Positions 4,501 through 46,500 of a DNA stretch of 64,000 bases are shown piece by piece (the first letter of the stretch is position 1; the number at the start of each line of letters is the position of its first letter). A program made the position numbers and the translations under genes. The stretch spans positions 30,318,001 to 30,382,000 of the forward strand of contig OZ076417.1 of NCBI GenBank assembly GCA_964187785.1. Direction: 5' to 3'. The stretch comes from Amphiscolops sp. MND2022 (lineage: Eukaryota). Under the pieces are notes generated by a model, which was not told the DNA's origin, did no database searches, and saw nothing but the letters and a program-made list of their open reading frames with translations.

Positions 4501-7500
4501 TTTGGCTTTAATGGTGTTTCCGACACGAAAAGCCAAACGCGCGCGAAGTATTTTAGTTTACAAGTCCAGTTTCACAATGTTCAACACCCGAAACAAATGT
4601 TACGTATACAATGATTGTAATATTATGTGCACCCCCCCCCAATCATTAATACCAAACACGTCACTTTCACTTATACTAATATGTGATAAATAACCAGCTA
4701 ATTTAGGCATTTTTACAAAATATTTAAACTTGTCAATCAAATTTTTAATTGTTATAATTATCAAATTGTTAATTATTCATCGTTGTGCTAGAAGAGAAGT
4801 GAAAGGAAATGATCTCACCTTTTGCAGTGCAGAGGCGGTGGTCAAGGGCTCCATGCCACTCTTCTCCCTGGGCATGAGGGTCTGGGACAGCTTGTTCTCC
4901 ATGCTCTGCAGCCACGAGTCGTACTCATTGGCCATCGTCATGCACAGTTCGTAGTCCAGCTCTGTGTCTCGCATGTCAGTGGAACACACGGACTGCCAAC
5001 AACAACCATTCACAACATCGACGCACAATGAAAACTAAGACTCCATAAAAACTTTTTCATGGAGTCTCACGGTATCAAAACCTCAAGGTAATCCTAGGTT
5101 GAAAAACATATATAATTCTTGAAAAAATCTTGCAAGTCAATGCATTATTCTTGCAAACTGTCTCGCAAGATTCTTGCAAGCAACGGATTGCAATGGCAAG
5201 ATTCTCGCAAGAACAATGCATTGACTTGCAAGATCTTGCAAGCTTCGACTGAAAATTCGAGTAAAAACTTTTCTCTGTATTCTCTCTATTGAACATCACC
5301 TGATGATCATTCACACTAATTCCTATTCTCACTTACTATCGATATGGCGATTGCAGACTAAAAGTTTTAGTATTCAAGTATTTTAAGATGATGAAAGCAA
5401 ATGTTGATTTGCCGATGTTGAAGAAGATGCGCGTTGGTCAAGTTTTTCGAGAACTTCATCGTAAAATTGAAGAAATTTTGAAACCGAAAATGAGGGGGGT
5501 TGGATTCCGCACTTGGTATTCAAGATGAGTTTTCTATTTTAATTGGCGTTCCAAGTTCCAAAAACAAGGGACCATGGAAAGGTTTGAGACAAACATTGAA
5601 TCAGAGGCAACAGTGGCGATATTTATATTTAAAATGTATGATACTTTATACTGACCTGTAAAGAAGACGCGGGGGTCATTAGTCCGGAAGTCACTGGCCC
5701 TGATCCCAGTTTCTGGACTGCTTCATCCGAAGCAGGAGGTTCCAGGGTCTCTGTAGATGCGGTTGTAGGAGTTACAGATTTCTTCTCTGGCAAAGTGGAA
5801 GAGCCAGTTGTAGAAGGAGTCGGTTTTTTGGTCGCTGTAAAAATGTCAACCACTGAGAAAAAACCAAATCCTTCAAACCCGAGAAGTTAAAGCTTTACGT
5901 TGAAACAAGATTTTGAACCACATTTTGAGGAGCACCGTGTCCATTGAATGGTAAATTTCATTGAAATTGGATGGATGAATTTGTCAAGATATAACACTTC
6001 GTCAACAATTTTGATCAAATTCGACTATTTATGTGGCTCAAAATGTATTTCAAACACAAGAGTTCGAATTGACTTCCGAAAACCGACTGTTCAAAATTCA
6101 TTTTCTCATGAACCCACTCCCTAGGTGATACCAAAACCAAAATGAAATGCATCAAAATCCATAGAGGTGATAGAGGAAGAAAATTGAGAATAAAGTCTGA
6201 ATATGAAAACCCATTAGTGACTGAAGCAGTTGTTGGATGAAATATTTTGCACACAAACCGAACACGCCAATTTATTAGACCTGAAATAGGTTACGTTATT
6301 TTGACTATCAAAAACTCAAAATTAGGCAAATTAAGGTATGCTGTTAATTTTTGATGAGTTATGCAGTTAAAATCTGGTATTACTTTACATACTGGCACAA
6401 TACGGCAAAGAGCATATTATCATTTTTCAATTTCAAGATATTGAAAACGGAGAAACTGTTTTGGAATGCTACGGATATAGGATCTTGTTCCATGCATTTT
6501 GGATAAAAATTTGGGAAACGCAGTGATTTTTGGAGAAAACATGAAACCTGCAATAACTAAGGGACCACGAAGCCGGGATTAGAAAATGAGTCTTTCAATT
6601 GAAAAGGTGAGATACATTTTTTAAAGAAATCGAGCGTGGAAGAATGACCTGAAAAAAAACATTGCTCTTTCACTTCAAATCCAAATCTCGGTGAAAAATT
6701 CCAAAATTTCAACATCCTTCAAAAATCTTTCACATTAGATAACTAACCTTTACGGCCTGGAGTTGTCTTTTGCTGAACAGGGGCTGGTTTTTTATCTGGT
6801 ACCTTTTTCCGAACATCCACTTTTGGGACAGTTGTGGTTGTTGGTGTTGTTTTAGGGCTCCTGTTGGAATTAGATGAATTTGATTCCAGACTAGACCTTC
6901 TGGATTTCAAACTGGCAGGTTTGGTTACGTCAATTTTGGGACTTTTCAATCCGGACTGAGTAGATCCGGAACCTGACCTCAGCGGAGGCGTGGCACTTTC
7001 TGATTTTATAGGTTTTGTTGGTTTTTTGGCAATTGTAGGTTTGGCGATTGTTACTTTGCTTGGTCCCTTTTTCTTCGGTGGTCTCTCTTCAACCTTCGCT
7101 TTCGCTGATCCTTGACTGGCTAAGCTTTCGCTACTAGAGAACAGCTGTTCATAGACTTCCTGGGAAATCAGTTTCTTCTGGATTGCTTCCGAAGGATGAA
7201 TGATTGTTCTGGTCGTTTCGTCGATGATGCCGGCGACTCCAAAAGCGCCTGGCATGGAACCGGCAGGTAATTCGGGAGTTTCAATCAATCCCTTGTTGGC
7301 AGCTGCAGTTGGAGTGACAAAAAGTTTAGTTTTTGGGTCGTAAACAACGGTTTCGGGAGTATCACTGATGTCAGTGGCAGAAGACGCTACAGAAAATATG
7401 TCATCATCAGCAATCCCCGCTTTCTCTTGAGAGTCTGTAATTGATTTGGCGTATGTTTCGGGGTCAAAAGTTGAACAGATTATAGACACAGGTGGCTTGC

Positions 7501-10500
7501 GAATCTCTTTCGATTGGAAATCAATGAAAGCAAAAGAAGTGGAAAATGATTTCGGGTCTTCTCCAACTTTGGAGGCAACAGAAACGAATTCTTCAGGAGT
7601 CAAGAGTCCCATGTTCAAAGCACATTCCAGTGGCATCACCTGGTTTGTACTTGGGTCCAAAATTGTGATTCTAGAAGCACTTTGGGGTGAAAATGCTTCC
7701 GGGTACTCTTGCTGTAGGGCTCTTATCTGTGAAGGCGCGATTACGTTTTTGTTCAAAGCTTCGGAAGGTCGCAACACAACGCCTTCTTTCACAATTAGCA
7801 AGCCAGGTACTTTTGAGGAATCATGTTGGAAGTTTTCATACAAGGCATCAAAAGTGTCCTGAGAGATTTCACCAGCATTTAGTGATGTTTCCACCGGTGT
7901 TACAGTCAACTGATCAGGACTGTACAGGCAAAGGCCAGTGGGTTGTCGATTGTGTTTAAACGTGGATGCATCAGACCTCAGCTTATTCAGAGTCTTTTGA
8001 TCGACTTGTCCTTCTCTGATAGCTGTTTCCAAAGTTTTGCTGAGTCGTGTATCTCGGTCGAACACGACAAGCTTACCTAGTTTAGCCGGACTCGCGGCTA
8101 AATTTTTAGCAACTTGGACAAAATCTTTCATCTTCATCAAACCCCTGGATGGGACTCTATCCAAGGGTATCAGCTGGTTCTGCTCTGTGTCTAGGGTTCG
8201 AATTTCAGAAGGCAGATTCCAGGGTTCAATTGTATCTGGCAAAACCCTGGACAGCTCCAGGCATTTAGGTTCATCGATTAGTCCGTTTTCCAGAGCACGG
8301 CTCAGTGGAATCAAAGGGTTTTGTTCGTCAATGAAAAGCAAGTTTTTGGTAATCTCCTCAGGTTTTTGCACCATTTTTGCAAAAACTTCAGAGACCGCAG
8401 CTTCTGAAACTTTATTCTGTCGTATCAAATCTTTCAATAAGTACTGAGTTTCTGTCTGGATATCAAAAACTTTGAATGTTGGAATGAAAACAGGTTGAGC
8501 AATTCCAGGATGCAAACATTTCAAAGCTTCCAGTTTTGCTTGATCCAAAAATCCTTTGCTCAATGCTTCATGAGCGGGCATGAGGGTATTCATTCGGGGA
8601 TGAACTGTCATGATCTTCGTCACTTTTTCAGGGCAGTTTTGCAAATCACTCATTAGACTGTCATACATGAGTGATGTAATCACCCCCGATTTGAGGGCTT
8701 CGGTTAGCGAGAACAGTTCTCCAGTTACAATGTCTAGCACTTTGAGTTGATTATGTTTAACAGGTTTGAAACCTTCCGGGAATGTTTCTTTAAGTTGGAG
8801 GTAAAATTCTTCATTGATGTACCCAAACTCAACAGCGTCTTCAGGAGAAACCAACTCTCCGTAGTCGTCGATTAGAACTAACTTTTTCCATGCTTCAGGG
8901 AAGTCATTCAGCTCAGCTAGAACTTCCAAGTACTTTTGTGAGCTTATATGACCTCTATGCACTGCTACTTCGATTGCAATGATTTCACCGCTGAAGTTAT
9001 CCAATACAAACACTTCACATGGGCGAATTGATTCCAAACAGTCTGGGTTGTTGTTGATGAAACTGTTATACAAGTCATGAGAAATGATTCCTTCGTCCAG
9101 TCCAGCTTTCAGTGACACCAGACATCCAGTTTCAGGATTGAGAACCATAACTTTGGTAACTTGACTCGGGTCCTCGAGCAATGTTTGGGTGATAGTTTCG
9201 TAAACTCCTGTACTCAATCTTCCAGACATTACAGCGTTTTCCAACATCAATATTTCAGCGCCATTTTCCAGAACCACTGTGATTCCTGTTGGGATGGTTC
9301 CTTCAAACGCGTTTGGGTGCAGATCTCGAAGTTCTTGGAACAGATTCGGACTTAGACATCTACTGATCACGGCTTCTGATGGTGTATACAAGTCGCCTGT
9401 GTTGGGGTCAACAACCATGACTTTTGTCACTGAGTAGGGGTTTTCGGCGGCTCGTTGCGTAACTTTGGTCAACTTCTCCAAGTTTGTGAACTGATCTCGA
9501 ATTGCATCATCCGATGACATAATCTTGCCACTGTCACTGTCGAGTATGAGGAAACTGAATGACAAGAACTGGTCAGCTTCTTTCGGGTGCAGGTCGTAGA
9601 ACCTTTTGTAGTCTTCGGCTGATAGGATTCCGTTTCGCAAGGCTTCGTCGAAGGAACTGATTTGGTTGTTGAGTGAAGAAAACACAACAGTCTTGGTCAA
9701 ACAGTGGGGTTCTTCGACTACTTTGTTTAGCAGTTGTTGGTAAATTGTGTGAGGAATCAATCTCTGTCGCAAAGCTTCTTCCAGAGTTGCGAATCTCTTG
9801 GAAGGCAAAATGAACACATTGAGTCCTGTAGCATTGACTGATTCGAAAGATTCCGGAAAGGCGGTTGCAATCGCGTTGTATCTTTCACTTTCAACGATTT
9901 TCTTTTTGAATGCCTCGTCCAAGGTAAGAACTTCATCTGACAACGGGTTGTACATCATCAATTTACACAGGAACTCAGTTCCTCGTTTGTATCTGTTCAA
10001 GGTCTCGTTGTAAACTTCAGGAGAAAGCATTCCATTTAGAACTGACTTCTCAATAGGAACAACAACGTCAGTGCCAATATGCAGAACCGAGATTCCAGAT
10101 GATCGAATTGGCATCAGCATGTCTGACTGGTTTTCTGCCAGCTCATCGAAAGTTTCTACATCCAAAAGTTCCAGGTCAACTGCGGCTATTGGGGTCAAAA
10201 AGTTCCCAGCTTCACTGTCAAGAACCATCATCTTGGTGACCAGCTCGGGGTCAACTTTCAGCTTTTGCAAGAACTCTCGGAATGTTTCCTCGTCTATCAA
10301 TCCGGTGGCAAAAACATCAAATAAGGGTACAATTTCCTCAGTTTCCGAAACGTATATTACAACACCTGTGTCCTTTAGAGGTTCTCTTATCTTGGGATAG
10401 TTCTGCTGCAACGATTGAAGTTCTATCAAGTCCAAAGCTCCAGATGCCAACGCTTCTTGTGGTGTTATAAGACAGCCCAAACTTTCATCAACTAGTAAGC

Positions 10501-13500
10501 ATTTGGTTAGAATTTCAGGTTCGGTCCTCAGCCTTTCCAAAATGACTGCAGCGTTTTCGAGTGAAACGTAATTGTTGGAAATTGCTTCTTCCAAGTTCAT
10601 TTCAGTGTTGAACTCTTTCGAGTAAACAGATAGACCCGGTGACTCCAAAAAGTGGCCTGCAGATTTTGTGTCACGAAGTAACTTCTTCACTTTCTCAGGA
10701 GTAACAATCTGTCTCCGCACAGATTCGTATAAGTTGAAGATATCTTTGCTCTTTTTATCGTAGACCAAAACTTTCGTCAACACGTGTGGCGTTGTTTCCG
10801 CAACTTCCAAAATTTTGGAATAAACTTTTTCAGATAGCTTTCCAGACTGGAATGCAGATTGCAAAGACTCTAGTTCAAATGTTTCCTCGTTTACAATTTT
10901 AATTTTATATTCCAAACCTGGCAGCAAGGCGAATGATTGTGAGAGCTGTTCAATGCCTTCGGGTGGTATCAAGTGGTTCTGGACCGCATCATCAAACGTC
11001 ATAAACTTCTCCGATACTTTGTCCCAAACCAGAGGACTCTGGCACTCATTATCGGAGTCAGTGAGGTCAAGAACATCACTAAGCTTGAACATTTTCTGCT
11101 CTATTCCTTCTTTCAGTGGATGAATTTTACCGGTATTCAAATCAACAACTGTGGTACTTGAGTTTTTATAACGGAAAACGTCTTTGGGTTTGAAAGAGTC
11201 CAGTGTTTTGATGTCAATCAAATTCGTCTCCAGAGCCTGCTTCAATGAAACAACCGAACCTTCCTCCGGGTTTCTAACAAGAAACGATGCAACATCCGGG
11301 AAGTTTTCTACAAGTTTTGCCAGAGTGTCCGAATAAGCTTCTGGGTGTACAAGGCCCAGGGAGAAAGACTCTTCCAAACTTCTGGAGCAGGCATCTTGGG
11401 TGTCATAAACTGCGATTCCACTGGGTTTTAGAGGATGCAAGAACTCCGCGTGTTCATGGAACAGATTTTTGTAGATTTCTTTGGAGAGCGATCCTTCCAA
11501 GTATCCCACTACGGGTGAGAGAAGTTCACCTTTTTCGGTCAAAACAAGCAAAGACGGAACCCCCTGAGGTACTTCAATTGCAATTTGTGACAAACTGTTG
11601 TATTTTTCGTAAGTCATATAACCCAAATTCATAGCATCCTCAATCGTGAAAATCTCTGCAGTTTTTGGGTTCAATATTTTGATTTTAGAAGACAACACTT
11701 TTTCGAACCCTCGGGTGAAATTTAAAAACAAAGACTCAAATTCTTCAGAGCTAATCAAGTTCGTCTCTAGCGCATTTTCTGGGGTCATCACTGAATTGGT
11801 TCCTCTATCTACCACAGTAAGTTTTGGCATATAAGCCGGTGAAGTTGCGCTCCTTACCAAAACAGATTGCAATTGACTGAAATTGAGCACACCCGACGTG
11901 AATGCTTCTTCCAGTGAACTCACATTCTTCGAATACGGGTCAAAAACTTGCAACGAGCTTAGAAGGGTTTCATCAGGTAGTTTTTGAATCAAAGAGTCGT
12001 AGATGCAGTCACTGATTAGACCTTGAACAAGAGCTTCTGCAGCAGTCAGTAGAAACTCGGAGCTCGCTGTTTTCTTCACAAAAGATTTTTCTCTGTTTTC
12101 AATTTGAGCAATTTTGTAATATCCTTCCACGGTCAAATGTTCGGAGATACAAGCCTTATCTGCTGGGTATAGAGTTTTCTTTTCTGGAATGTAAAGAAGC
12201 AAAAATGAAGCCATTGAATTGTCGAAGTAAAGCGAAGTCAAGTAGTTTTCAACTGCTTGACGCTCTACAACATTGTCAAGAAGTGCATCCACAAGATGCC
12301 AAACGTCGGCACATCCTTTTGAGACAATCGAAATGGGCGGGAAGTTCGGGAACGTGGCAATAAGTTGACGTGTTTTGACAGGCACTTGGTCAACTTGTTG
12401 CGTTTCAGCATTTAGGACATTTATTTCAGCTGATCGCTGAAACAATGCAAAAATACGGTAAGCCGAGATAGTTGCATTAAAACGTGAACGGATGTCGGAT
12501 AGTTGGAACTCTGTAATGATTTTCTTCTCAACTGCGTCGTGAATTGGCATAAACTCAGTTTCTGATTTCTGTAGAACTAAATTGGCAAAGACAAGTAAGC
12601 AAAACTTGTCAACTTCTGATACCAAAGTTGCATCGAGGCCTTCACATTCTTCTTTGCTGATGAGTTTTCTATGTTTTGCTTCTTCTGGGGAAACTTCAAT
12701 GTCTGAGTCATGCACCGGGAATACAAAAATCCCAGGTAATTGTCGAACTTCGGATCCTTTCTCATTCGTTGAAAACTTGCCACTGTTCAAGTTGTAAACA
12801 TTCGGGAGTTGAGAGTTCTCAAGTGTGAAGTGAACAAGCTTAGGTGCGGAAACTTGGACCAAAGACATCGTCGACACTGCTCTTGACGATACTTTTGATT
12901 CTGGGTCGGACATGAGCTCTTGCGAAACACTAAGACCGCTCGTCGCTAGAGTAAGCAAGTCTGATTTCGCAACTGATGCATTTCGCAGCGCCAAGTAACT
13001 TTCCATGTCAAAATATCCCAAACCGAGAGCTTCTTCGAGACTGAACTCCTCATTTGTCACCGGGTCCACAATGGAAACTCGTCCAGGCACGAACACAACT
13101 TTTTCGGGACCAAAATCAACTGGATCTGTTTCTTTTGACTTGAGTACTTTGTACTGGGCATGTGAAATTATTCGCTTCCGGTAGGCCTCAGCAAGCGAGT
13201 AAAGCTGTGAATTGAAGGGATCTTGAATTGTCACGGTTGGAAGTTCGGAACTACTGTCAGAAATGTCGCTACTGAATGCCTTGCTGATAACCCTGTCATA
13301 TGTTTCTTTGTCTATTAATCCATGCTCAAGGGCTTCATCTAATGTGTACGTTTTCCCAGAAGACTTGTCGGTTATGACAATCTTAGTTGGCAATGGTCGT
13401 CTTTGAACGGTTGGAATTTCATCATTTTTGTTGGCTTCTGATCTTAATCTCTGGAACACGCCCAAAGAAATGAGGCCTCTCGCAAAAGCCTCTTCAGGTG

Positions 13501-16500
13501 AAAAAGTTTCGTTGGTTTCAGAATGGCTGATATAAATTCCTCCTTGAATCTGAGATACTTTCAGTTCATGAATGCCCATTCTTTCCTGAGCTTTCAGCTC
13601 CAGGTATTTCAACTCATCAATCAATCCGAAATCCAGAGCTTCGTCCAAGCTTTTTTGTTCCCCGCTTTCAGGATCAGTGATAAGGATCATGCCTTTACTG
13701 GAACTGGTTTCATCAACTTCTTCTTTTTCTGTGTCTAATGACTCGTCCAAATCTAAATGAGACATTTCATGAATCAACTGATACAGTTCGGGGCTGATTA
13801 CATTTAGAGCCAAAGCATCATCCAAAGATATGGATGCCAGATTGGTTTTGTCTATTACTGAGAAATGCAGCATTTGCCAAATCCTAGATGTTCTGGGAAT
13901 CTCTTCCACAATTTTGTCCGTTCGTTCTTCCAAGATTTCGCAAGTATCACTGTTGATCAAACCTGATTCAAAGGCTTTTGCAGGAGAAAGCAGTGCATCG
14001 GTGCCAGGGTACGCAACTTTGATGACAAGCTCGAAGTTGTCTCTCAAAGAAGGACTTTCGATTGGTTCGGGTTCCAACACACTTGTGATTTCAAACAATA
14101 GCTTGTGGTATGTTCTTTTATCAATTAGGCCAATTTTCAGAGCTTCATCCGGCCGGATTACAGATCCACTGTTTGCATCATAGACCATAGGAACATCGGG
14201 CACTTCTTCAAACTTGAATCTGGGTTCCTTCGGTTTCTCGATTCCAGGTCTGGTTGGGGTCACAGGGCTCTCGCGTAATCCCAGATTTGACCTAACAGGA
14301 ACAGTTTGGGTTGTCTGAATTGTGACCAGTTCAATCGAAGTGTCGATTTCTTTCAAATCACAGTAAGTTGAATGGTCAATGAGTCCTCGTTTGAATGCCT
14401 CGTCAGCAGAAACCTTTCCGTCTTTCAGTTGAATTTTGTCAGTCGGCGAGGGTTCGATCATGAACGCATGCTGCACTTCAACTTGTGGGTTCAATTGCTG
14501 CAAGAACTGCATCTTGCCTTCGCCCAGTTCAGCTTCTTCGGTGAAGTACAGAGTTTCAGATGATTTAGAAACAGTCAGTTTGCCACCATTGTCTTTCATT
14601 TGCTGGTATTCCTCATCAGTAATAGGCACCCCAGTGTCAATACGCTCCTTCAGCTTCATCTCCCGGTACGTTGTTTCGTCCAGAAGACCTCTTCTTCTGC
14701 CTTCTTCCAGTGATATTCTTTCCTCAGTTATTGGATCAATCAGGGAGACCCTTTTGACTAAATTAGCCAGAAGTTCTTTCTTCGGATGCATCAAGACAAC
14801 TGGACTGGTGGCCACAACAGACAAGGGAGAATAAAGTTCACTTTGGGCATCTTTTTCCTTTAGCATTGGATCATCTGAGACCAGATTTGTGAGTGCTTTC
14901 TCTTGTTTCTTCTCATTCGTCGTCTCCTCCTTAGGTTTTTCAGCGACAATTGGTTCAACAGCTGTTACTTGAGGTAAAATGATACCAGCATTTTTAACCG
15001 CTTCCACCGACATTTCAGAGTTTGTACTTGGGTCAAAAATTTTAGTCTTTTTAGTTTTGGAACTTCGTTCTTTCAATGTCTTATACATATCTGAGTCGAT
15101 AACGTTGGATCTCAGAGCTTCTTCCAAAGTCATTTTGCTCCCAGTTTCTGGTGAAACAACTCGAAGTATCTTTCGTTTCACTTTCTGGTACTTCTTCTTT
15201 GAGGGCGAGGTAGACCCAAAACTCTCTGGGGTTTGTGATTCGAGAGGAATTGAGAAACCTTCTCCCAAAATGACATCAGAAGAAACGGTTGGTTCTTCTT
15301 TAATTGGCAAGTGTTCTTGACTGATAACCTTTCCGTCGACAAACTTGTACTTGAATCGTCGTCCATCGTCAGTTTCGATATTGATGTTCAAAGTAGTTGT
15401 GCTGGACAATTTCAAGTTTTCATTATCCTCCAACTCAACTGCTGTTTGCGCTGACAATGCAGGTTCTTCAGTAGCATCATATGGAACGACGATCGCATTC
15501 GGGTCTTTCTCAATTTCACCAACAAGGCTCTCGTCGGTAACTGAGAACTTTTTGCGTTGAACTGTTTTCCTTCCACTAGTTGGGTCAGCGATAGTTTTCT
15601 CCAAAATTATGAACTTCTCTTCCACACTTTCAACAGGAACATCGGGAGTTTTTATCTGCTTCACACTTATTCCCACTGATGGGGAGTCACAAACCTCAAG
15701 AATTTCATCGTCCGCAATCTCTTCCTCTCCGAACTTCACAAATTTCTTCTCGGCTTTGCTGGATTTAATTTCAACTGAGTTTATATTTTTGGATCTTACT
15801 TCCAGAACTTCGTCTGGTCGTTTGTTGCTAATTTTAGCGGCTTCGTCTTCAGTTTGAAGAGCTAAATACAGCTTCGAAGCTTTCTTCGGCGATGCCTTCT
15901 TTTTATGTGCCTTCTCCGGACTGATAAGTCCAAAAATGCTTTGGGTCGACAAACTTTTTGTCATTTTGCGAACGAGACATGCCTTTGAGCTGTAATATGA
16001 TGTCATCGTGAATCTTTGGTTGTTTTCTAGACATTCTCTTGAAACTATAAAATATCGACTGGTGCCATCAAAGTGCTCTGAAACAGAAATGGAACCCAAA
16101 TGTCGAATTTGAACACAGACTTCGAAGCCTTTCAAGTCAGGTACCAATTCGTTTCTGTCTAATTTTTCGAACTTTGCGATGTCGATGGCATCCAAGTGCT
16201 GAATGACTTCAGTGGCATTGGGCATCGTTTTCAAGCCCATCAGTAATTTTTGCGCAGATAACTTTTCACTTTCCGGAACATTGAAAAAACACTTGAGCGA
16301 AGACTTTTTCAAAGACACCTTGTGTCGATAAAACTCGGGAATTTCTTTTGCTGTAGAAGGAATCCAAAAAGTGCTTCTCTTAGTCTGGTTTTTGTCGTCG
16401 TCTTTTCTGATGACCGAAAATTCAATGAGTCTTTGAGGGTATGTGGCTGGTGTTCGATTCACCAGCACTTTCAAAATGATCGACCTGTAAGTTCTGGAAA

Positions 16501-34500: not shown

Positions 34501-37500
34501 TTTCTACTTCAACCGGCACATCCAACTCGAGATCAGTCAAAGTCTTCGTTACTTCAGGCAGGAATTCAGAAACTTCACCATCGAAAAGTATTTCTTTCTC
34601 CGGTAGTGTCACCTGCTTCACTGGCTGTGAGTGCACAACAAGAGGTAATGCTTTGCTTTCAAACTCTGTTGTCACATCAGCTGCCTCTGCAGTCTCGGTC
34701 AGAGGCTCTTTCAAAGCTTGTTCGTCATCTGGCTCGAGCTTCTCCTCAGAGAGCTGGATAAACATCTCAGGAGAAACTTCCCCCACTGTTTCTCCGTTTT
34801 CTGGTTGGTTCTCAACAGTATCGTCTGCTTTCATCTCGGTCTTCTCTGGTTCTAAAAATTCCAGTTCTCCAGCGTCTTCGAAAGGCAGCGTTTCGGCATC
34901 AGACTTACTTGGCACAGTTTCTACTTCAACCGGAACATCCAACTCGAGATCAGTCAATGTCTTCGATACTTCAGGCATCGTTTCCGAAACTTCAGCATCG
35001 AAAAGTGTCTCTTTCTCCGGTAGTGTCTCCTGCTTCACTGGCTGTGAGTGCACAACAAGAGGTAATGCTTTGCTTTCAAATTCTGGTGCCAAATCCACTG
35101 CCTCTGCAGTCTCGGACTGAGGCTCCTTCAAAGCTTGTTCAACATCTGGCTCGAGCTTCTCCTCAGAGTGCTGGATGTACATCTCCGGAGAAATTTCACT
35201 CACTGTTTCTTCGTTTTCTGGTTGGTTCTCAAGTGTATGCTCTGCTTTCATCTCTGTCTTCTCTTGTTCCAAAAAATCAAGTTCTCCAGCGTCTTCGAAA
35301 GGCAGCGTTTCTGCATCAGACTTATTTGGCAAAATTTCTACTTCAACCGGCACATCCAACTCGAGATCATTCAAAGTCTTCGATACTTCAGGCTTCGTTT
35401 CAGAAACTTCAGCATCGAAAAGTGTCTCTTTCTCCGGTAGTGTCTCCTGCTTCACTGGCTGTGAGTGCACAACAACTGGTGTTGCTTTGCTTTCAAACTC
35501 TGTTGTCACATCAGCTGCCTCTGCAGTCTCAGTCAGAGGCTCTTTCAAAGCTTGTTCGTCATCCGGCCCGAGCTTCTCCTCAGAGAGCTGGATAAACATC
35601 TCAGGAGAAACTTCCCCCACTCTTTTTTCTTCGTTTTCTGGTTGGCTCTCAAGTGTATCATCTGCTTTCATCTCGGTCTTTTCTGGTTTCAAACGTTCCA
35701 GTTCTCCAGCAGCGTCCAATGGCAGCGTTTCTGCATCAGACTTACTTGGCACAGTTTCTACTTCAACCGGCACATCCAATTCGAGATCAGTCAAAGTCTT
35801 CGATACTTCAGGCATCGTTTCAGAAACGTCAGCCTCGAAAAGTATCTCTCTCTCCGGTAGTGTCTCTTGCTCGGCCGGCTCTGTTTCAAAGTTACAGGCT
35901 CCATTTTCGTGCTCAGACACGTAACTTGATTCTTCAGACAAATCAAGTGCACATATTTGTTGTTCCTCAATCGATAAGTCTGAATGAATACTAGTATATC
36001 TCGAATATTGAAGTGGTTCAACGTTTGGGTCAATTTCGGTTAACGGAACAATTAGGTTGCGTTTTTGAGGAATTCTGGGAGGATATCGGCTCTCAGTTGC
36101 ATCGGGATCCGGGTCACCAAGTTCCTCAAGAATTTCATCGGTAAAGTTCTCCAATTCGACATCCTGAACCAAAATTGGTACCAAGAAATCTTTGTATTCA
36201 AGCTCCAGGTCTTCTGAAACTGGTTCATTTATCCCTGATTGTGAGTTATCATCTGAAACAACTTCACTTTCATCATCTGGCTCTAGTTTTTCTTCTTTCT
36301 GAGGTTGTCTCTCCGAAGCTAAGTAAACTTCAGATTGGCTTCTGAAAAATTTCACCGGCGTTTCACTTACAATTTCCTCTGATTCCTGTTGCTCTACCAT
36401 ATCGTCAGTATCAACTCTCACAACATTCGACTCCGCCCACAAAAATCTTGCAGAGATGTCATCAGGTTTTTCTTCGTCGAACAGTGGTGCGTCCTGGTCG
36501 ACAGCTTCTGGTGACTCTTCCGCCATAATTGCTATGCTACCAGCAGATAAATGTCTTTTCTGGGTGACCTCGGGGGTGTTTCCTTCGTCTTCCACTTTTT
36601 CATATTCAATTAATACAACTTCTACTTCAGGTATTAGTTCGATTTTCTCTGTAGAAAGAAACCTAGAAAGCTTATCAAAAACCACTTCTGTGCCAGTTGT
36701 TACCTCTTCCGTCGTTTCCTCCGCCGGACCGGATTCTTCCACCTCGCACTGTGGAATTTTTTGACCGACTAGAAAATTATTCAAAGCGCCGGATTCTAAA
36801 TTTTTGTCAGGTGAAGTCTCTTCTTTTTCTTCCTCCACCTTGTCTTCTTCGGGATCATCTAATAGCAGTTCAACACTATTGTGTTTAAATGTCGTCAAAC
36901 CCCTGCGCTGAGGTTCGAAGAGTTCTTTTTGGACTCCTGTTTGATCGTCTTCGCCTTCTTGAACTAAAATTGGCACCAACAAATCACGAGAACTTTTTTC
37001 TTCATCAAGTTTGGTCTCCTCTTCTGTTTCGTCTCCGGAACTTGATTCGTTTTCGGATTGACAGATTAACCTAGGCCATTCTAGAGTTCCAGCTTCAACA
37101 GGTACTTCCTTTAGAGGTACTATTTCAGTGAATTTTGAAAGTACTGGAGCCTTATACATTTTGTCTACTTTTGTAGGATCCGGTTCTCCGAGTTCTGTAA
37201 CTATTGTCTCCGAGTCATTTTCTAGTTCAACTTCGCCCAAGATAATAGGCACCACAACATCACTGTCTGTTGTTTCTATGTCGGGATGAAAGTCTTCCTC
37301 TTTGAGCTTGTCACGACTTTCTCCCAAAACTGTATCTTTGTGAACTGATAGAACTTTAGGTCTCTTGTAAACTTGTTCCTCCACTTCTCTGCGTTCTTCC
37401 ACAACTGGGAAATTTTCGACTGGTTTTTCGCTGTCCAGTTTTCGCTTGGGAACCTTATCTAAGATCACCTTTTCGGGTTTGCGTTTGTCTTCCAGCTGAG

Positions 37501-40500
37501 CAACTTCTGATGTTGTCCTCAAGGGTTCGGGTGCTTGATTGCAATCAATGAAATGAATAGAAGAGCCATAACCCGAAATGATATCAGTCGAATGAAACAC
37601 ATGTTCTAAACATGCAACAGTCATGCTGGGAAAGGGATCAGAGGAACAACAGAAATTTATGACAATTCATGGAAAATTCGTTCCTCAGAAAACTGAAGGA
37701 ACAACACCAGTGTAAAATTCAAGAAATCAATCATTATTTACAAACAAAAAAAACAATCCGTGTGCCAATTCCAGGTCAAAAGTGGTGATTTCAATAAGAG
37801 CAATCACTATTTACTGCAATCAATGAAAGGCCGACAGTGGTTTTCATTAAAACATGGATAGAGTCCATTAAAATTGAAGTAATCAAAAGATGCGGTAAAG
37901 AGGGAATCAAAAAACCATGAACAAAAAATTCAAGACAGATGCAGGTTCAAGATATCTAAGATATCCAATTCAGTTTTTCTCTGTACTACCGGGGTTCGAA
38001 CAAAAAATTACAATACCACCCCCCTCCCACTAGCAGGTATATCAAGAAAATCCGATCAAACTCAAACTTCATTCAACCAACAAATTCGCTAGCAAAACCC
38101 AAGTTCAACAGGATTGAGAAGTTTTCACTGTGCATATCATCGCCACTCAATTTAGAACTTTACGCCGTGAACTTGAGAGAAAAAACAAACGGTTCTTCAG
38201 CGAAAGATGGCGCTTTGCCTATTTTCTGCACTAACAAAAATTAGCAGTTTTTGTCAACAAATTTTGTGGGAATTCGAGCCCGAAATAAAGTGACGGGGAA
38301 ATATTTGAGAGTGCAAAAACAGGACCATGGAAGGTTTGAACCTGAAAGTGTTCATTCAAACCACATGTCGTAAATTTTTGAATAAAAGGTCTGGTTCATA
38401 CAAATAATGCGGATTATATTAGAGTGCCTTTTACCAGACAAAATACGACACGCAGTAGCGGAAAAATCAATCGATGTTATAACTTCCGGTTTCCACAATG
38501 ATTAGTTGGGCAGTTCAAACCAATGAATGACATAAGAATTCTTGGTTTTTGTTTTCCTATTTTACACTGATAGCTGAAGTTCCATCTAATTTCCCAAAAC
38601 CATAACACCGAGCGGTTACCCAGACAAGCAAACATGCATGTTCTCATACAAAAACTGGAAAAATTCGTTGAGAGCATTGTTTTCGCAAAAAAGCACAAAT
38701 CTTTCAAAAAAACTATTACTTTCCGTGTGATGAATTCAGAAGAAAATGAACCAAGAATTTTGAAATCAACAAAACTTTGGACATCAATGACACTGCAGAT
38801 AGTATGATTCTCTTTTGAAAAGTATCCTGAAAGACAATTTTCAGAATCATATTATTGAAAAGACAGGATTTTTTCTATTCACGTAACATTTTAAAAGAAT
38901 AAACACCAAATGAGCGCAAGCAGATGAATACATGGCTGCAGAATTGAATATCAGAGCAAAATCATGAAATTTTTGCGCGCAATCGAACGCTCGCATGATT
39001 TCAATGAATATTTCCAGTGATTGTAAATGGGTAAGACACAAAAAAAAACATAGAAGACGGACCCTCGTTAGACAAAACAAAAATTCCACTCCCCAAAAGT
39101 GAAAAAAAAATGAAAAAACAATTCTCACCAGTTTCGTCGATTCCTGATAATTTCATCAACTCAGGTCGTTCTGAAACAAAAATTTTCATTCAACTTCTCA
39201 TTAGCATACATTCTTCGTATGCACACACACTCTTTGTATGTGCAGATACACAAGCGCAAACAAAAATTTGAATCCAAAAAAAACCATGGACTGGTTGAGA
39301 ATAAACGAACCTCTATTTCGTTTGTTTTGCTGATACAATTTTTCTATGAACAAAATAATGAAATTTCCACCCACTTTCACTTCGATTTTTCAGATTTTTT
39401 CTTAAATTCTGAAATCAAAATTTCAGAACATCATTACAACACATTGCACCTTGAAAATCTATGAACTGACCACAAGTAACACATAACTCACCATAAATCC
39501 CAGAACTCATTGGCTCCAGTAAAGACTGTTCAGCAGACATTTTCATGACCTTTTCTTCTTTTTCAGGATCTAAAAATGCCACCCCCTCAGCAAGTAACGA
39601 TGGCTCAACCTTTTCGGGTTTAACACTTTCTTCTCGCGCTACTTCAATATGAGTTAGGGCTGAAAATGCGGGGATTTCGGAACTTTTTTGCAGATCATTT
39701 CCATGTGTCTCATCTAAAAACACCACCCCATCGGCAAGTAACGATGGGTCAACTTTTTCAGGTGCAACACGCTCTTCTCGCGCTGCTTCAATATGAGTTA
39801 GGGCTGAAAATGCAGAAATGTCAGGACTTTTTTCCAACTCATTTCTATGTGTCTCAGGGAGCAACTCTTCCGGGTGGTATTCTGAGATAGCGTCAGCTAA
39901 GGATGTTGGAACTGGATCTTTGTTTTTAGACTCGCCAACATTCAAAATTGGTTGGAACGATTCGAGTTCAGATTGGGTAATTAGGTCGCTAGGGTCTGTT
40001 GAAGAAATGATGGGTTGGAATTTGTTTAGAGAGTCCAGAGAACTTGGTTCAGCCGGTGAGCTTAGGTCCTCTTCAGAAGAACTGACCACATCCATTTGCA
40101 ATGTTGGGAATGTTTGGTACACTATTTGCTTCTCAGGTGACGAGCTCAAAAGTACATCCAGGGTAGTTTCGGGGAGACTATCCATTTTAAGCAAAGGTTC
40201 TTTGCTGTCCTTACAAATTGGATCTTGTTCGATGATAGGTTGACATTCAGTCACCACGCTCATTTTCTCACCAGAATCCAGTTTCTGCAAATCTTCTCGG
40301 GTTTCGAGAATCTTCTGAGACCCAGGTTGAGTTGTCGGGATTTGACCCAGACTGCTCAAGTTTTCTTCTTTGGTTTCTTCATCCAATGGTTTAGCATATT
40401 CAACTGGTAATTCAGATTCTGGTTTCTTTTTAGATTCTTGATTCTCGGCGGATACGGTGTGTTCAGCTTTTTCGGGTTCATCCAATGCCTCCATAGAATC

Positions 40501-43500
40501 GCAAACATCCATGCCAGGCATGGTTTCAGTCACAGGTTTTGCAAACTCAAGAGGCTTATCGCTGGTGGATTCTTCTGGTAGAAGACTAGGGCGACTTTCA
40601 ATGCCATCTCGCAATTGCACAAACATACTATCGTCTACTATTTCTGGGCAGGCATCAAAAGTTTCGGGATCATTTTGAGGCAATGCTCTAGAAACAGCTG
40701 CCTCGATTTTTCTCGCCTTCGTTGGGTCAATATCATCTTCGTCGTAAATTTCCATCGGAGTTTCCTTCTGTGCTTCTTCGACAGAATCATCAACGGCTGC
40801 CTCTTCTGTTAAAATGTCTTCCGTCTCAACTGGTACAGCCCTTTGGGTAGCCAGATCCTCAATTTGAGCAATTTCTTTACACGTGTCCTCATCCAATTGC
40901 GACGGAGCTTGGTTCTCACTTTGACTCGGCAAGTCGTTCAGATTCTCTTCAGCGATCGGAGGTATCGTCCTGAATGTGACATGAGCCACCGGTTGATCTC
41001 GGGTGACATCCTTGTCCAAAGGAGGAGTGGACATGAAAACTGGGGTGACTGACTCATAGCCTGACTCCAAGTCAGTTGTGAACGAATCAGACGGGGATCC
41101 AGTAGGTGGAAGTAATCTAAACCTTGACATGGGTTGTGAGAAAGACGTGCCTCCGATACTCGACATGCTTGAATTGTTATCAGAAAGTGCCTTTATCGGT
41201 GCCAATGCAACTGCTTTTACTTCTCCAATTGACGCCAGCCAATCAACAGCAGGTATTTCAACTTCTTGTTCTTCGTTGAGAGTTGGCTCTGCTTCACCAA
41301 CTTTGAAGAGCTTGCCTTGTTTCACCAGTTCAGAGACGAAAGGCGTTTTCATTGGGTACTGTCTGGATTCAACTGCATCTTGTTCTCCCATTTCGCGCCT
41401 CATCAAAACCAAACCTTCATCCTTATCTTGTAATTTTTCAGCCTGCACTGAATAAATTTCACACGGCATTTCGAAATCACCTGTTTTTGCAAGACTCACT
41501 ATTTCAGCAGACAATGGTGGGATTTCTTCTTCCACGATATCGGATGCAGACTCCCGTCTTTTGCGCGAAATCGCGGTGATTCGATTTGAAATTGATTCCT
41601 GTATTTCTTTCGGAAATTTATCAAACTGAGATGCAAGGTCAGGAAAAACCTCTTTGATCATAGGATCCTGGTAAAACTTTGGGGGTTCCGTTTTTTCTGC
41701 ACTTTCGCCGACAACTTCAGGTTGCAAAGCTTTCGATAAAACAATGGATGACACATCCAATGCAACTGGCTCGTCTTCCATGATTTTAGGTTCACTTTCA
41801 GCTTCAGGTTTGCTTGGTGTTTCAGAGACATCGCTGACCACAAACTTGCGACACTTTCGCATCAGGCTGGATATAAATTTGGAAGGCTCAACTGGTTCTT
41901 CCTCAGAAACTTGCATGAGTTCAGTCTTTGTTTCGCTAGAAGAGCAAATTGTTTGCTCTTCAGTTTTGGGTTCGGTTTTAGCTGTTAGAATAGCAACTTC
42001 TTGAGTGAAGTCTTCGGTATTTGGAATTCGTTCAGAGTCTTTCTCGTCAATTTCTGAGCTTTCAACGAAGCTCAATCTGTTTTTATTCTTTTTGGATTTG
42101 ATGTTGATTTCTGTGATTCTCTGTTGAAGAGAGGAAGGCACTTGTCCTGGAAGCACTTCGTAGACATTCTGTCTCTCTTTTTCATCAGATCCAAGTCTTT
42201 CATGACTTTCTATCGAAATAGCTTCTCCCAACGAATTGTCCCACAAAGACTTTGGAAGCTCTACAAGGTAAGTCGACTTTTCTGAGGGCAAAGGTGTCTG
42301 AAGAGATTTGGGCAACTCATTGTATTTTATCAACTCATCGATGAAAACACATTGAGGTGGGTACCGCCGTATCTCCATGATTTCTCTTTCGAAAGGCAGC
42401 TTTCGAACTTGTAAAATGCTCAAAAACTTATTGCCACTTTCGGCAAACTCCTCATCTAGTTTTGCTCTCAAGATGTCATCCGTTTCAGACACTTTTATAG
42501 GAATGAAGGCTTTGGTCGGTTTAGGAATTCTGGCTTTCGCTTCTTTTGTTTTCACTGTTTCGTAAACAATTTCAGACTTCTCAGACGATTTTCGGTGCTT
42601 CAAATTTTGAGAAACCACTTTCAGAGCTAAAGTAGTTGTAGAAAGTTGCTCATCTTGGATTGATTTTGGAACTCTGCCCATGTTTATTAACTCTGTGACG
42701 TATTTTGAAGTCGGTTGAAACTCCCTGATTTCGTTGAAAACTGTTGATCCTTTTAGATCTTGAAGACTTGATGATATCAAAACTACTTTCTCACAATCGT
42801 CTTTGACCATCTCCACAACACTGGTATTCATTTTCAAGCTGGGCTCGCCTTTGCTTGTCACTTCCCACGAATTCAATCGGAGAAAGTTTTTGGGTACTTT
42901 CGGAAATTTGACAGCTTGACATATCTGGGAAATGGTTCTGTCGTCCACGAATAACAGTCGGCTTTCTTGTTGAGATGAAAGATTTCCAGAAAGCCATTCA
43001 GCGTTGTTGAGTTGTCGGTAAAGATCGTTTTTCACTTCTTTTGATGACAAATATGGTTGGAAATGATTTGCTGCTTTCATCTTTGAGACCAATTTCGCAT
43101 CAGCCAAATTATGCACAGGTACTTTAGCGTCTTTATACTGCTTCAGAGTCGGACTGCTTGCTCGATGTCGAGTTGTGACAGAAACAAAATTACCCTTCGA
43201 GTCAACGCCTTTTCGAGACAAATTGATAACTTTTTGCCCAGTTTTCAGTTTCTCTTCGGCCATTTTGATTTCCTGGATGTTCATTTCAGCTTCAAGGAAG
43301 TCAAACTTGTCTGCGTCAATCTTATTCAACTCTTTCGTTGCTTCAGGGTCTTGAGATGGGTCAGGAATGATAGGAACAAAATCACTGTTGACTCTTTCGT
43401 ATACTCGTTTTACAACCCGCTCTAGGACGTATCCTTCTTGGTTTGGGTCCTCTGATATAACTTCACGGTCTGGTTCCTCTAGCAAAAACGGGGCAGGTAC

Positions 43501-46500
43501 CAAGCCTTGGTCAACAAGGCTCAATAATGTAGGCGACTTGGGTCTGTGTATTTCTTGTGACACTGATTCTTCACCAACTCTGTCAACAAACCTCTCCGTC
43601 AACATCACAAGTCTTTCACTTGAGTCTTCGACAACGTCCTCAACTCGGATGATGTAAACAGCATTGTTATCAGCCTGGACCTCAGATTTGAAAACAGATG
43701 CATTCTCATTTGGGGTTTCCCGTTTTTTGACCAGAAACTTCCGCTGAATTACTTCCTCGGTAGACCTGTCGTGGACAGGCGTTGCGCAGAAAGATTCAGG
43801 CAAGACTCCAGTTTCAACTAAATTGAGTATCGTCGGTGAGTCCGCGCGATGTACAGTTTCGACGTTAACTCCGTCTTCGTTGTTGAATACTCGGATCATT
43901 CGTTCTCCTTTCTCGTCAGTTCCGTCCTCGATTCGGTATGACCATGCGTCGTAAGTCTGCGGAGTCGTGCTGTCTGCAGCTGCTTGTAGGAGATTCAAAG
44001 ACCTTGATCCAGGTGACACTGGTCGATCTTCGATGACCTTTTGTGACACTCTCTTCGATGTTTTGATCTCTTTTTCAGGGGCAAGAGGCAACTCAAATTG
44101 CATGTCAATAGAGTCAATGTAAGTGACGTTTTTGCGTTTTTGATATTCTGGTAACTTGCTCCTCAGTGTCTCCAACCTTTTGCTGTCGACGTCATACTTT
44201 CGTTCAAACTCGACTTCGTCACCGACCTCAGAGAGGTAGGTTTTTGTAACCAAAGAATACTTTCGGCCATTTTTATCTGTTTTGTCTTCAATTTTCACTG
44301 TGTGCAGAGAAACTTTCATGCCCTCGATTTCTTGTTCTGAAACTAGAGATTCGGTGCTAGATGTGGTCTCCATATAGCCACTTGCATCGGAACCAGAAGA
44401 CTTCCGTCTAACGGAAACCATCATTGTGTCAATATGGGGAGTCTTGGGAACGGATTTGACACCAGCTTCGCTGAGAATGTTCAACACTTCTTCCTCATAA
44501 TCAGTTCCCTTCACTTGTTCCAGCAGCTTCGGATCGTCCAATCGGAAGTACAGTTTTTCAGTGTTTTCTCCTTCGCCCACAACAATTTCAATTATTTCAT
44601 CGTTCGCTGACAACTGAGGCTCATCGTCTCTAGCAGGCAATGCGTTTTCCGGAATGATACCAGCATTCACCATGTCTCTAAGTTCAGGGTCGGTCACTTT
44701 GTACTCCCAAACTTTCTCACCATGGCATGTTTGGAACTTCACGTAAACTCGGTTAACTTCGGTCGACTCTTGGTCAGCAATTTGTTCAACAACAACAGCC
44801 ACCTCCGAATCGTTGATCGCGTTCTGTTCAGTCAACATAATTTCTTCGAGACCCGTGCTTGGGATTTCTCCGAATTCAACCAATGCTTTCACAACTATTT
44901 TGAGCATTCTTTCAAAAGTGTTTTTCAAGCTACTGTCTTTCAGAACTCGAGAAAGTTCTGCATCTCTGGGTTTAAATAGCAAAGTTTCAGAGTAAAATTT
45001 ATCCTCATCATCATTTTCGTTCTGCAGCATTTCGACTTCTACGAAAACTTCACTACAAGAGTAAGATTGATTGGGACTCAAATCATTGGGCAAGGAACCC
45101 TCTAATCGAAGTTTAGCAACATCAGCGTCATCTGGTGCGAATACTCGTTGTGAAGTCTCAACTCGCAAATCTTGAGTTACTTTTGCGGTTATGTTAGAAA
45201 CTGTGAAGCTGTTGTTGTCATTTATCCAAATCTCTTCTATTTTTCGGCCTTGTACAACAATAGAGATTGTCTTGTCTTTCGTGGACAAAAGAACTTTAGG
45301 AATATCTGTTTGAACAGAAACTTGCACAGGTGTTGACGACCTTTCCATGGGCATCGATGATATAGGTCCTGATTGTTCGGGATCCAGAAAGTCTTCTTCG
45401 ATTTCCCGATCGATTGTGGTGTGAATTCTAGTTTTAGATGATTCCAGAATCAAATTTGTGGGTCTGTCTGAGTTAGGATCATACTGTGATCTCGTTTCCT
45501 CGATGCTAGTTTTGAGGTATTTTTCTGAAATTGTCTTTGAAGATACAACTGGAAGACCGGCAACAAACTGTTCAATTGCAGGATCTCCCTTTCTGAATTT
45601 TTTCACCTCTTCGACTGTGTTTCCGTCTGGGCCTTTCACAACTCTGGTAATTTCTACAAAATGATCTTTTTCATAGGCCGTTTTAAACTTTCTCTTTGGT
45701 TCTTCAGAATCCAGCGGAATTATCTTCTCAACCAGTACTTCTTGTCCGTTCACCATCTCCGTTTCTACGCAAACTATAAACTTCTCCTCGCTTTCTGGAA
45801 TCGTATCGTCGCCCTTTCTGAATATATGCAACAACTCTGCTGCTTTTGGGTCATCGGGTTTGAAGTACTTAGCTTGGTTATGAGTAATTCCATTCTCGTC
45901 AGTGTACACTCTCGTTATTTCCACCAAACCTTGTCTAGACTGGGTTTCAAAGGACGACAAGCTATTGGGGTCAATTTCTCCTCCTGCTTGCAGAAGTTCT
46001 TGAACCCTAGGGTCATCCACGGGAATTTTTGTAGCCGTTGTTTCTAGTTTGTTACTAATCGGGTTGATCTCTTTGATTACATAATACTCATTTTCCATTT
46101 CCACAGATGTCGTGACTGTTTCTCTTTTTCGTTTGCTGGCCCGAACTCCCCGAGGAGACGAAGGTGTAACCGGCACAACATATGGTTTCAGCTCGATACC
46201 TTGTTGACCGGGGTCAATCTTGATGTCTTTCAATGACTCTCCTTTCACCGCAGCAGCTCTGGCAGCGGCAAAGTCTGGAAGCTGTAGTTTTGGAGCTTTT
46301 ATGGGCGGGGGTGGGTTCTGGATAACACGTGTAGTTGTCTGTCCCTGGTCTCTTTCTGTAACCAAGTCCACAGACTGAGATTCAGTTACAGTTTCTGTGA
46401 ATTGTTTTTCACGCTCCACAAGAGACGAAGTACGGTCTCCCTCCTGTAACAAAAGGATTCAAACATTGACTAGTTGAACTTGATAAAAAATATTTGAGCT

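Follow-up and report, generated by a model that had tools for sequence, protein, structure and literature searches.

The window analyzed here, a 64,000-nucleotide (64 kb) stretch of the acoel Amphiscolops sp. MND2022 (contig OZ076417.1, positions 30,318,001 to 30,382,000), carries on its minus strand part of a gene that, by its domain content, is an acoel spectraplakin of the MACF1/Shot/dystonin type. This identity follows from an SH3_10 exon and plakin exons upstream, plectin repeats in the third of three giant exons (E1, E2, and E3), and rod exons matching a MACF1-like protein. The nearest relative, the MACF1-like protein of Symsagittifera roscoffensis, shares 56-61% identity across E3, and the first four rod exons in the window match amino acids (aa) 2862-3169 of its isoform X1. 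Spectrin_2 and Spectrin matches at 54127-55239 are weak and lie under the curated cutoffs, with the orthologous S. roscoffensis exons giving the same matches. The S. roscoffensis protein possesses Spectrin, EF-hand, and GAS2 Pfam domains, and the rest of the acoel gene lies beyond the window. An N-terminal calponin-homology (CH) domain was not seen within the 64 kb, its expected position being upstream, past the window end. No paper linking acoels with spectraplakins was found in the literature searched.

Three giant exons at the plakin-rod boundary

E1, E2, E3, and a short linker exon (L) separate the last plakin-domain exon from the first spectrin-rod exon (Table 1). Orthology and Pfam matches of these flanking exons fix the insert position, with the SH3_10 exon upstream and the MACF1-like rod exons downstream, in agreement with a sequence-only reading of the window that had placed the block at this boundary. 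The exon lengths given by that reading (6952, 14442, and 15912 nucleotides, nt) correspond to minus-strand frames open from stop to stop over 46458-39418 (2347 aa), 37666-23090 (4859 aa), and 22672-6746 (5309 aa), bounded by canonical splice sites. The GC content of the inter-exon gaps is 0.34-0.37 versus 0.42-0.48 in the exons. We assign a probability of roughly 70% to the reading that a single spectraplakin gene contains all three giant frames as successive coding exons, which fill the plakin-repeat slot together with the linker exon.

Table 1. Features of the Amphiscolops spectraplakin locus (window positions; a slash marks an exon boundary)
Feature	Positions	Strand	Properties
Plakin-type SH3 exon	60888..61193	-	Pfam SH3_10 PF17902, E 3.4e-8, 33.9 bits vs cutoff 22.8; syntenic with S. 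roscoffensis L002 5837-6150
Plakin-domain exon, spectrin-like repeats	54217..55215	-	tblastx 65-78% identity to S. roscoffensis exon L002 6514-7524
Last plakin-domain exon	49689..49997	-	phase-0 donor CAG/gttggt; C-terminal end ...DITDLLKKIQ
Giant exon 1 (E1)	39492..46443	-	6952 nt (mod 3 = 1), phase 0 to 1; acceptor ttacag/, donor ATG/gtgagt
E1-E2 intron	37534..39491	-	GC 0.35; indel variants of 1 or 5 nt
Giant exon 2 (E2)	23092..37533	-	14442 nt (mod 3 = 0) with the acceptor of the sequence-only reading, phase 1 to 1; donor CAG/gttagt
Acidic tandem array in E2	23209..35871	-	417-nt (139-aa) unit, 30 full + 1 partial copy
E2-E3 intron	22660..23091	-	432 nt, 12 in-frame stops, GC 0.354; donor G/gttagt, acceptor ttcag/
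Giant exon 3 (E3)	6748..22659	-	15912 nt (mod 3 = 0), phase 1 to 1; acceptor tttcag/, donor AAAG/gttagt
E3 acidic head	18002..22659	-	~1550 aa, not conserved; Asp + Glu 26.7%, net charge -290
E3 conserved pre-plectin region	15161..18001	-	~920 aa; aligns with paralogue P0024 from aa 3974
E3 plectin (plakin) repeat region	7142..15160	-	at least 34 repeats
E3 basic tail, Ser/Thr/Lys/Pro-rich	6748..7141	-	reaches the phase-1 donor; Lys + Arg 18% including linker
Linker exon (L)	5656..5852	-	197 nt (mod 3 = 2), phase 1 to 0; acceptor tctcag/, donor CAG/gtcagt; ends ...TPASSLQ
First spectrin-rod exon	4819..4992	-	phase 0, begins SVCSTDMRDT; acceptor ttggcag/; tblastn match with RefSeq X1 aa 2862-2920

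The acceptor of E2 is ambiguous: besides the site at 37533, which is weak, in-phase alternatives are present at 37605, 37506, 37503, and 37488, so the exact 5' end and length of E2 are not fixed. The phase of E2 holds with every in-phase candidate. The best polypyrimidine acceptor near E2, at 37625 (cccag/C), is out of phase with the E1 donor and lies one base before an in-frame ATG at 37624; an alternative first coding exon may start here, unless the site is a decoy.

Composition of the block

E1 is composed of a conserved repeat region (46311-40909, residues ~50-1850 in the conservation profile) and an acidic, non-conserved tail comprising the last ~470 residues (40908-39492). The repeats follow a pattern exemplified by ...GER.IR.F.N..G...ETVHRADSPTILNL...G.LP, and AlphaFold2 (AF2) predicts three strands and a helix per ~50-aa repeat, with only moderate overall confidence (predicted local distance difference test score, pLDDT, of 57) that rises to ~75 in the repeat cores. 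Searches by structure and by language model found no relative, Foldseek giving template-modeling (TM) scores <0.3 against the PDB and AFDB clusters and the ESM Atlas a top score of 0.53. At least three other acoel assemblies retain E1 as an open frame, 1948-2436 codons long (33-52% identity), with orthologues in close relatives showing 52% and 46% identity and more distant homologues 33-38%. An interpretation of the E1 repeats as divergent plectin repeats was rejected for now, with no Pfam match even at E 10, no match to the plectin profile derived from E3, and an hhalign probability of 0.55%.

At the end of E1, a 144-nt tandem repeat in two copies (39568-39856) carries the motif PS(L/M)L(A/S)EGVAF twice. 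The same motif is found in the E3 head (aa ~50 and ~690) and in an acidic exon of S. roscoffensis (aa 232-245 of the L002 acidic open reading frame, ORF), and may constitute a conserved short linear motif.

E2 begins with ~550-600 aa of unique sequence, followed by the tandem array. Residues 136-558 of E2 align with residues 134-590 of E3 at 36-37% identity (E 1e-47 to 1e-50), an alignment by which the 5' part of E2 is an old duplicate of the E3 head. A comparison for traces of the duplication at the E3 acceptor and in the intron upstream of it gave no similarity (z -0.9 and 0.3). In the array, Tandem Repeats Finder reports a period of 417 with 30.4 copies and 93% matches. Neighboring units share 94% identity and distant ones 89%, a gradient that fits a real array and argues against an assembly artefact. 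E2 contains 28% Asp + Glu and 8.4% Pro, with a net charge of ~-1,025, and AF2 models its unit as all coil, with a predicted TM score (pTM) of 0.13. The E2 protein (23090-37666) scores 1e-21 as a whole against Pfam DUF7357 (PF24054), no single stretch passing; this score probably adds up weak matches to the repeated acidic unit and does not assign a domain.

Three lines of evidence demonstrate that the E2 frame is kept under selection. First, the array holds no stop codon versus 7.8 expected, given at least 184 distinct variant alleles and ~4.2% of single changes leading to a stop (P ~4e-4), with 23-367 stops in the other five frames. Second, the units measure 139 aa in 28 cases and 140 and 138 aa in one case each, so that length changes involve whole codons only. 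Third, all four indel variants detected by the genomic runs in the unique part of E2 (36290, 36390, 37312, and 37314) span 3 nt, compared with 1, 5, 5, 1, 1, and 1 nt for those in the E1-E2 intron (37746, 38546, 38551, 39040, 39275, and 39276), marking the coding boundary at the population level.

Several observations weigh against the assignment of the block to one expressed spectraplakin. The E2 acceptor at 37533, an 'aag' site, is weak. The ratio of nonsynonymous to synonymous differences (pN/pS) between E2 units is 0.67, indicating weak amino acid constraint, and the variants listed for the unique part comprise 6 synonymous and 19 nonsynonymous changes. E2 has no sequence counterpart in relatives. 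Moreover, the only sequencing runs found for the organism are genomic, and CH, plakin, E1, and acidic sequence is absent from all 14 RefSeq isoforms of S. roscoffensis. The weak constraint on E2 fits a disordered spacer retained for its length, charge, and frame, not its sequence.

The weak acceptor and the pN/pS value, together with units that are 93% alike and lineage-specific, would also be expected if E2 were not an exon but a young, coding-derived tandem satellite in a long E1-E3 intron, open in one frame. Such an origin could draw further on the acid-rich composition, which also yields long antisense open frames, yet it is highly improbable in view of the absence of stops among independent variants and of the whole-codon unit lengths and heterozygous indels. 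It also leaves unexplained a strong G/gttagt donor two bases before the frame closes, a ~600-aa unique 5' part that stays open despite only 36% identity to its E3 paralogue, and an acidic exon at the same place in S. roscoffensis. The antisense frames, which reach 1134 aa across the array (plus strand, 23566-35921; 23-87 stops per frame), arise incidentally from codon usage rich in Glu.

E3 begins with an acidic head that has no counterpart in E3 of S. roscoffensis or species B and contains a recent internal duplication of ~430 aa (aa 216-646 and 921-1362; 18580-22025; 73% identity). In the conserved pre-plectin region that follows, the motif VELTR...YYKHDDPELLKYL at aa 1654-1685 matches the E1 motif profile (E 1.7e-11), so that the acidic tract is flanked by E1-type motifs. 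This tract, formed by the E1 tail, all of E2, and the E3 head, covers 6,838 aa with a net charge of -1,384. The repeat region matches Pfam Plectin (PF00681, E 2.4e-80) and periplakin 4Q28 (E 2e-10), shows 60-61% identity to S. roscoffensis XP_063718483, and gives 34 hits of a profile built from E3 itself at aa 2505-5177. That E3 carries the plectin repeats supports the sequence-only reading. The linker end ...TPASSLQ corresponds to ...SPASSLQ/SISSTDMRET in S. roscoffensis RefSeq X1.

A probable single polypeptide and its possible isoforms

The S. roscoffensis loci L002 and L004, overlapping at 99% identity, present the same exon order: plakin exons, an E1 homologue, 2.7 kb of intervening sequence, an acidic open frame of 1118 aa with an internal duplication of its own, ~6.5 kb, and an E3 homologue. 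The latter (P0003, 4138 codons; L004 10001-22417) is 99.9% identical to RefSeq X1. The plakin-to-E1 junction, ...ITDVLSKIQ/gtttgt ... ttccag/GAAAGT, is in phase 0, as in Amphiscolops, and the sites around the acidic exon are weak candidates, all in phase 1. E2 and the S. roscoffensis acidic exon show no homology beyond a short LSEGVAFA-like motif; the acidic middle is the evolutionarily plastic part.

A second S. roscoffensis spectraplakin-like locus, L005 (ERZ25071366 ctg21093l 10001-30335; P0024, P0027, P0025, and P0026), contains a plakin SH3 exon followed by a giant frame of 7577 or 7591 codons in a single exon of ~22.7 kb (P0024/P0027). This frame is composed of an E1-like part (214-1840, 33% identity), an acidic Glu/Ser-rich part (1840-3970), and an E3-like part with plectin repeats (3974-7504, 29%). 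In the L005 assembly itself, a 36-nt-wide frame change splits the frame into 3444 and 4120 aa, possibly through an assembly error. Since the paralogue holds all three regions in a single open frame, a natural fusion, the E1-type, acidic, and plectin regions are, on comparative grounds, parts of one polypeptide, and one giant exon is probably the ancestral state. Conservation, synteny, and this single-ORF paralogue together identify all three giant exons as real coding sequence of one protein region, a point on which the sequence-only reading is upheld.

Annotated models cover only the downstream part of this arrangement. The 14 S. roscoffensis isoforms (X1-X14, XP_063718483-498) share one start Met inside the E3 frame, at residue 1281 of 4138 in P0003, and all hold the plectin part, linker, and rod, with differences confined to the rod and C-terminal tail. 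Among NCBI models of 3,900-12,300 aa, none joins the plakin exons to the rod, and no NCBI model was found to contain E1. This pattern would be expected from two transcription units, one encoding an N-terminal product (CH, plakin, and perhaps E1) and the other a product starting in or just before E3 (plectin, rod, EF-hand, and GAS2), in which case the giant protein spanning E1, E2, and E3 would never be made; the ATG at 37624, one base past the strongest acceptor-like site near E2, could likewise be accommodated. We consider this arrangement decidedly unlikely. The RefSeq Met is not conserved in Amphiscolops E3 (aa ~2480-2500), and the frame remains open for 1,280-2,490 codons upstream of its position in all three species, so the RefSeq start probably reflects a 5' truncation, an internal promoter being less likely, and the models probably lack a large 5' part. 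Automatic models of giant exons are often truncated in this way. The 7,577-codon paralogue frame runs unbroken through all parts, and the E1-E2 intron contains no AATAAA or ATTAAA poly(A) hexamer. The lack of a hexamer also led us to reject an isoform terminating at E1, although this is not decisive.

Five sequencing runs were found for the organism (X1-X5), four of which were mapped over 36000-41999. Depth is flat through the intron, splice joints are lacking, and X3 displays GATC ligation ends, identifying the runs as genomic DNA or Hi-C; a stretch that is ~85% intron is present in them at 0.72-0.78. In run X3 (sample S2), word depth reaches ~226-282 at 38000-38800 compared with ~60-90 in the flanks, pointing to a repeat element that may lie within the E1-E2 intron.

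The exon phases define which products could be spliced. E2 and E3 are symmetric (phase 1-1, lengths divisible by 3), E1 and the linker are asymmetric and must go together, and the block as a whole is phase 0-0, permitting a direct plakin-to-rod skip; exon lengths and in-silico joining uphold these features of the sequence-only reading. Joining from KKIQ to SVCSTDMRDT yields just five stop-free combinations, exactly those it had listed: none, E1+L, E1+E2+L, E1+E3+L, and E1+E2+E3+L, giving inserts of 0, 2383, 7197, 7687, and 12501 aa, respectively. Joining with E1, E2, E3, or L singly fails. The largest of these products agrees with the proposed block size of more than 12,000 aa.

From these phases the sequence-only reading had derived a combinatorial cassette set in which E2 and E3 are individually skipped or included, tuning the linker between 0 and 12,501 aa. 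The five permitted combinations and the two phase 1-1 exons are compatible with it, as are, weakly, the plausible S. roscoffensis sites, also in phase 1; every spectraplakin studied shows alternative splicing of its internal plakin-repeat region (10.1101/122010; PMC2173965). We nevertheless regard modular use as unlikely. Three matching intron phases arise by chance in ~1/10 of cases, so the symmetry argues only weakly for design; inheritance may be enough to account for the phases, as the likely S. roscoffensis sites are also in phase 1, and phase compatibility permits modular splicing without implying it. The paralogue, with the whole block in one exon, is not modular there, which argues for all-or-none use ancestrally. 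The runs found are all genomic, and the 14 RefSeq isoforms of the orthologue include no variation within the block and no plakin-to-rod skip. In addition, the E1+L and E1+E2+L isoforms would be devoid of plectin repeats, and no other segment of the block has a known role.

Proposed architecture and comparison with known spectraplakins

With the three giant exons read as consecutive parts of one gene, the 12,501-aa insert would comprise ~1,800 aa of acoel-restricted repeats, a polyanionic coil of ~6,800 aa, a second conserved region followed by at least 34 plectin repeats, and a basic tail. Originally the block very probably formed one giant exon, a state still kept in the paralogue, and in this lineage two phase-1 introns would have split it inside the fast-evolving acidic tract. 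E2 would then have grown by duplication of the 5' part of E3 and 30-fold tandem amplification of the 139-aa unit. At least one mRNA is expected to include all three giant exons, and the block as a whole is probably an optional insert, by analogy with Shot, MACF1, and dystonin. By a similar analogy, the acidic tract may provide a long spacer, flexible and self-repelling, or an entropic spring that links the end binding actin and junctions to the plectin repeats plus rod; the plectin repeats would dock to intermediate filaments or junctions.

With ~4,160 aa for rod and tail, as in X1, an assumed N-terminus of ~1,400-1,500 aa, and the insert, the full protein would measure roughly 18,000 aa. The term 'titin-scale' in the sequence-only reading is generous, as the whole protein would reach roughly half the size of titin. 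A spectraplakin of ~18,000 aa in which a disordered polyanionic tether of ~6,800 aa keeps novel junction-side repeats apart from at least 34 plectin repeats, with individual cells adjusting the tether by skipping E2 or E3, is quite doubtful; if true, it would amount to titin-like length tuning in a cytolinker, not a sarcomeric protein.

In animals, spectraplakins are the principal proteins cross-linking actin, microtubules, and intermediate filaments, and what their plakin-repeat insert does is poorly understood. The Amphiscolops insert is the largest found in our comparison, at 12,501 aa versus ~3,000-3,500 in Shot. Not described before in the family are the conserved acoel-specific repeat region and the disordered acidic tract of ~6,800 aa with its thirty 139-aa units. 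If translated as a whole, the block would place this protein among the largest animal proteins known and offer a natural experiment in stretching a cytolinker with a disordered spacer. A 22.7-kb single exon beside its intron-split, tandem-inflated homologue provides a case for the evolution of giant exons.

Within acoels, the S. roscoffensis orthologue shares the plectin region (60-61% identity), the SSLQ/S..STDMR junction, the exon order, and the phase-0 plakin-to-E1 junction. It differs in a middle exon of 1118 aa that is unrelated and lacks the 139-aa array, in an E3 of ~4,140-4,170 versus 5,309 codons, and in RefSeq models that begin inside E3 and omit everything upstream. The paralogue (L005) likewise has a plakin SH3 exon followed by E1-like, acidic, and E3-like parts in that order, but in one ~22.7-kb exon and with an acidic middle of ~2,100 aa devoid of the 139-aa array.

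The E2 array resembles the PEVK region of titin in being low-complexity, rich in Glu, Pro, Val, and Lys, built of tandem units, predicted to be unstructured, and embedded in a giant cytoskeletal protein; its 30 tandem low-complexity units, with AF2 predicting coil, resemble a PEVK-like spring in this respect. The two regions appear unrelated in sequence, and the unit measures 139 aa versus ~28 aa. E2 is strongly net-negative and occupies one exon compared with about a hundred small, differentially spliced exons in titin. Pro, Glu, Val, and Lys make up ~70% of titin PEVK compared with ~45% here.

Among known spectraplakins, MACF1b and dystonin/BPAG1b carry an isoform-specific plectin-repeat insert at the same plakin/rod boundary (10.1101/122010). 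Their ~20 (MACF1) or 9-11 (dystonin) repeats are organized as plakin repeat domains over several ordinary exons, with neither a giant acidic tract nor E1-type repeats. The closer parallel is the Shot plakin-repeat exon, which measures 10,497 nt, encodes ~3,000-3,500 aa with 33-40 dispersed repeats, and yields isoforms of up to 8,846 aa (Roper and Brown 2003, PMC2173965). Shot-PH and the Amphiscolops gene both place spaced plectin repeats, without 4.5-repeat globules, in a giant exon between the plakin domain and the rod, consistent with 'gigantic' isoforms. Shot uses one exon, whereas the acoel block spans 37.5 kb with three giant exons and a linker, forms an insert ~3.5 times larger, and includes a conserved repeat region of ~1,800 aa and a polyanionic disordered tract of ~6,800 aa, neither present in Shot. 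Alternative inclusion is established for Shot and, by analogy, probable in the acoel. The two genes thus agree in the slot, in having dispersed plectin repeats, and in using a giant exon, and the three giant exons, their size, the E1 repeats, and the acidic tract set the acoel gene apart.

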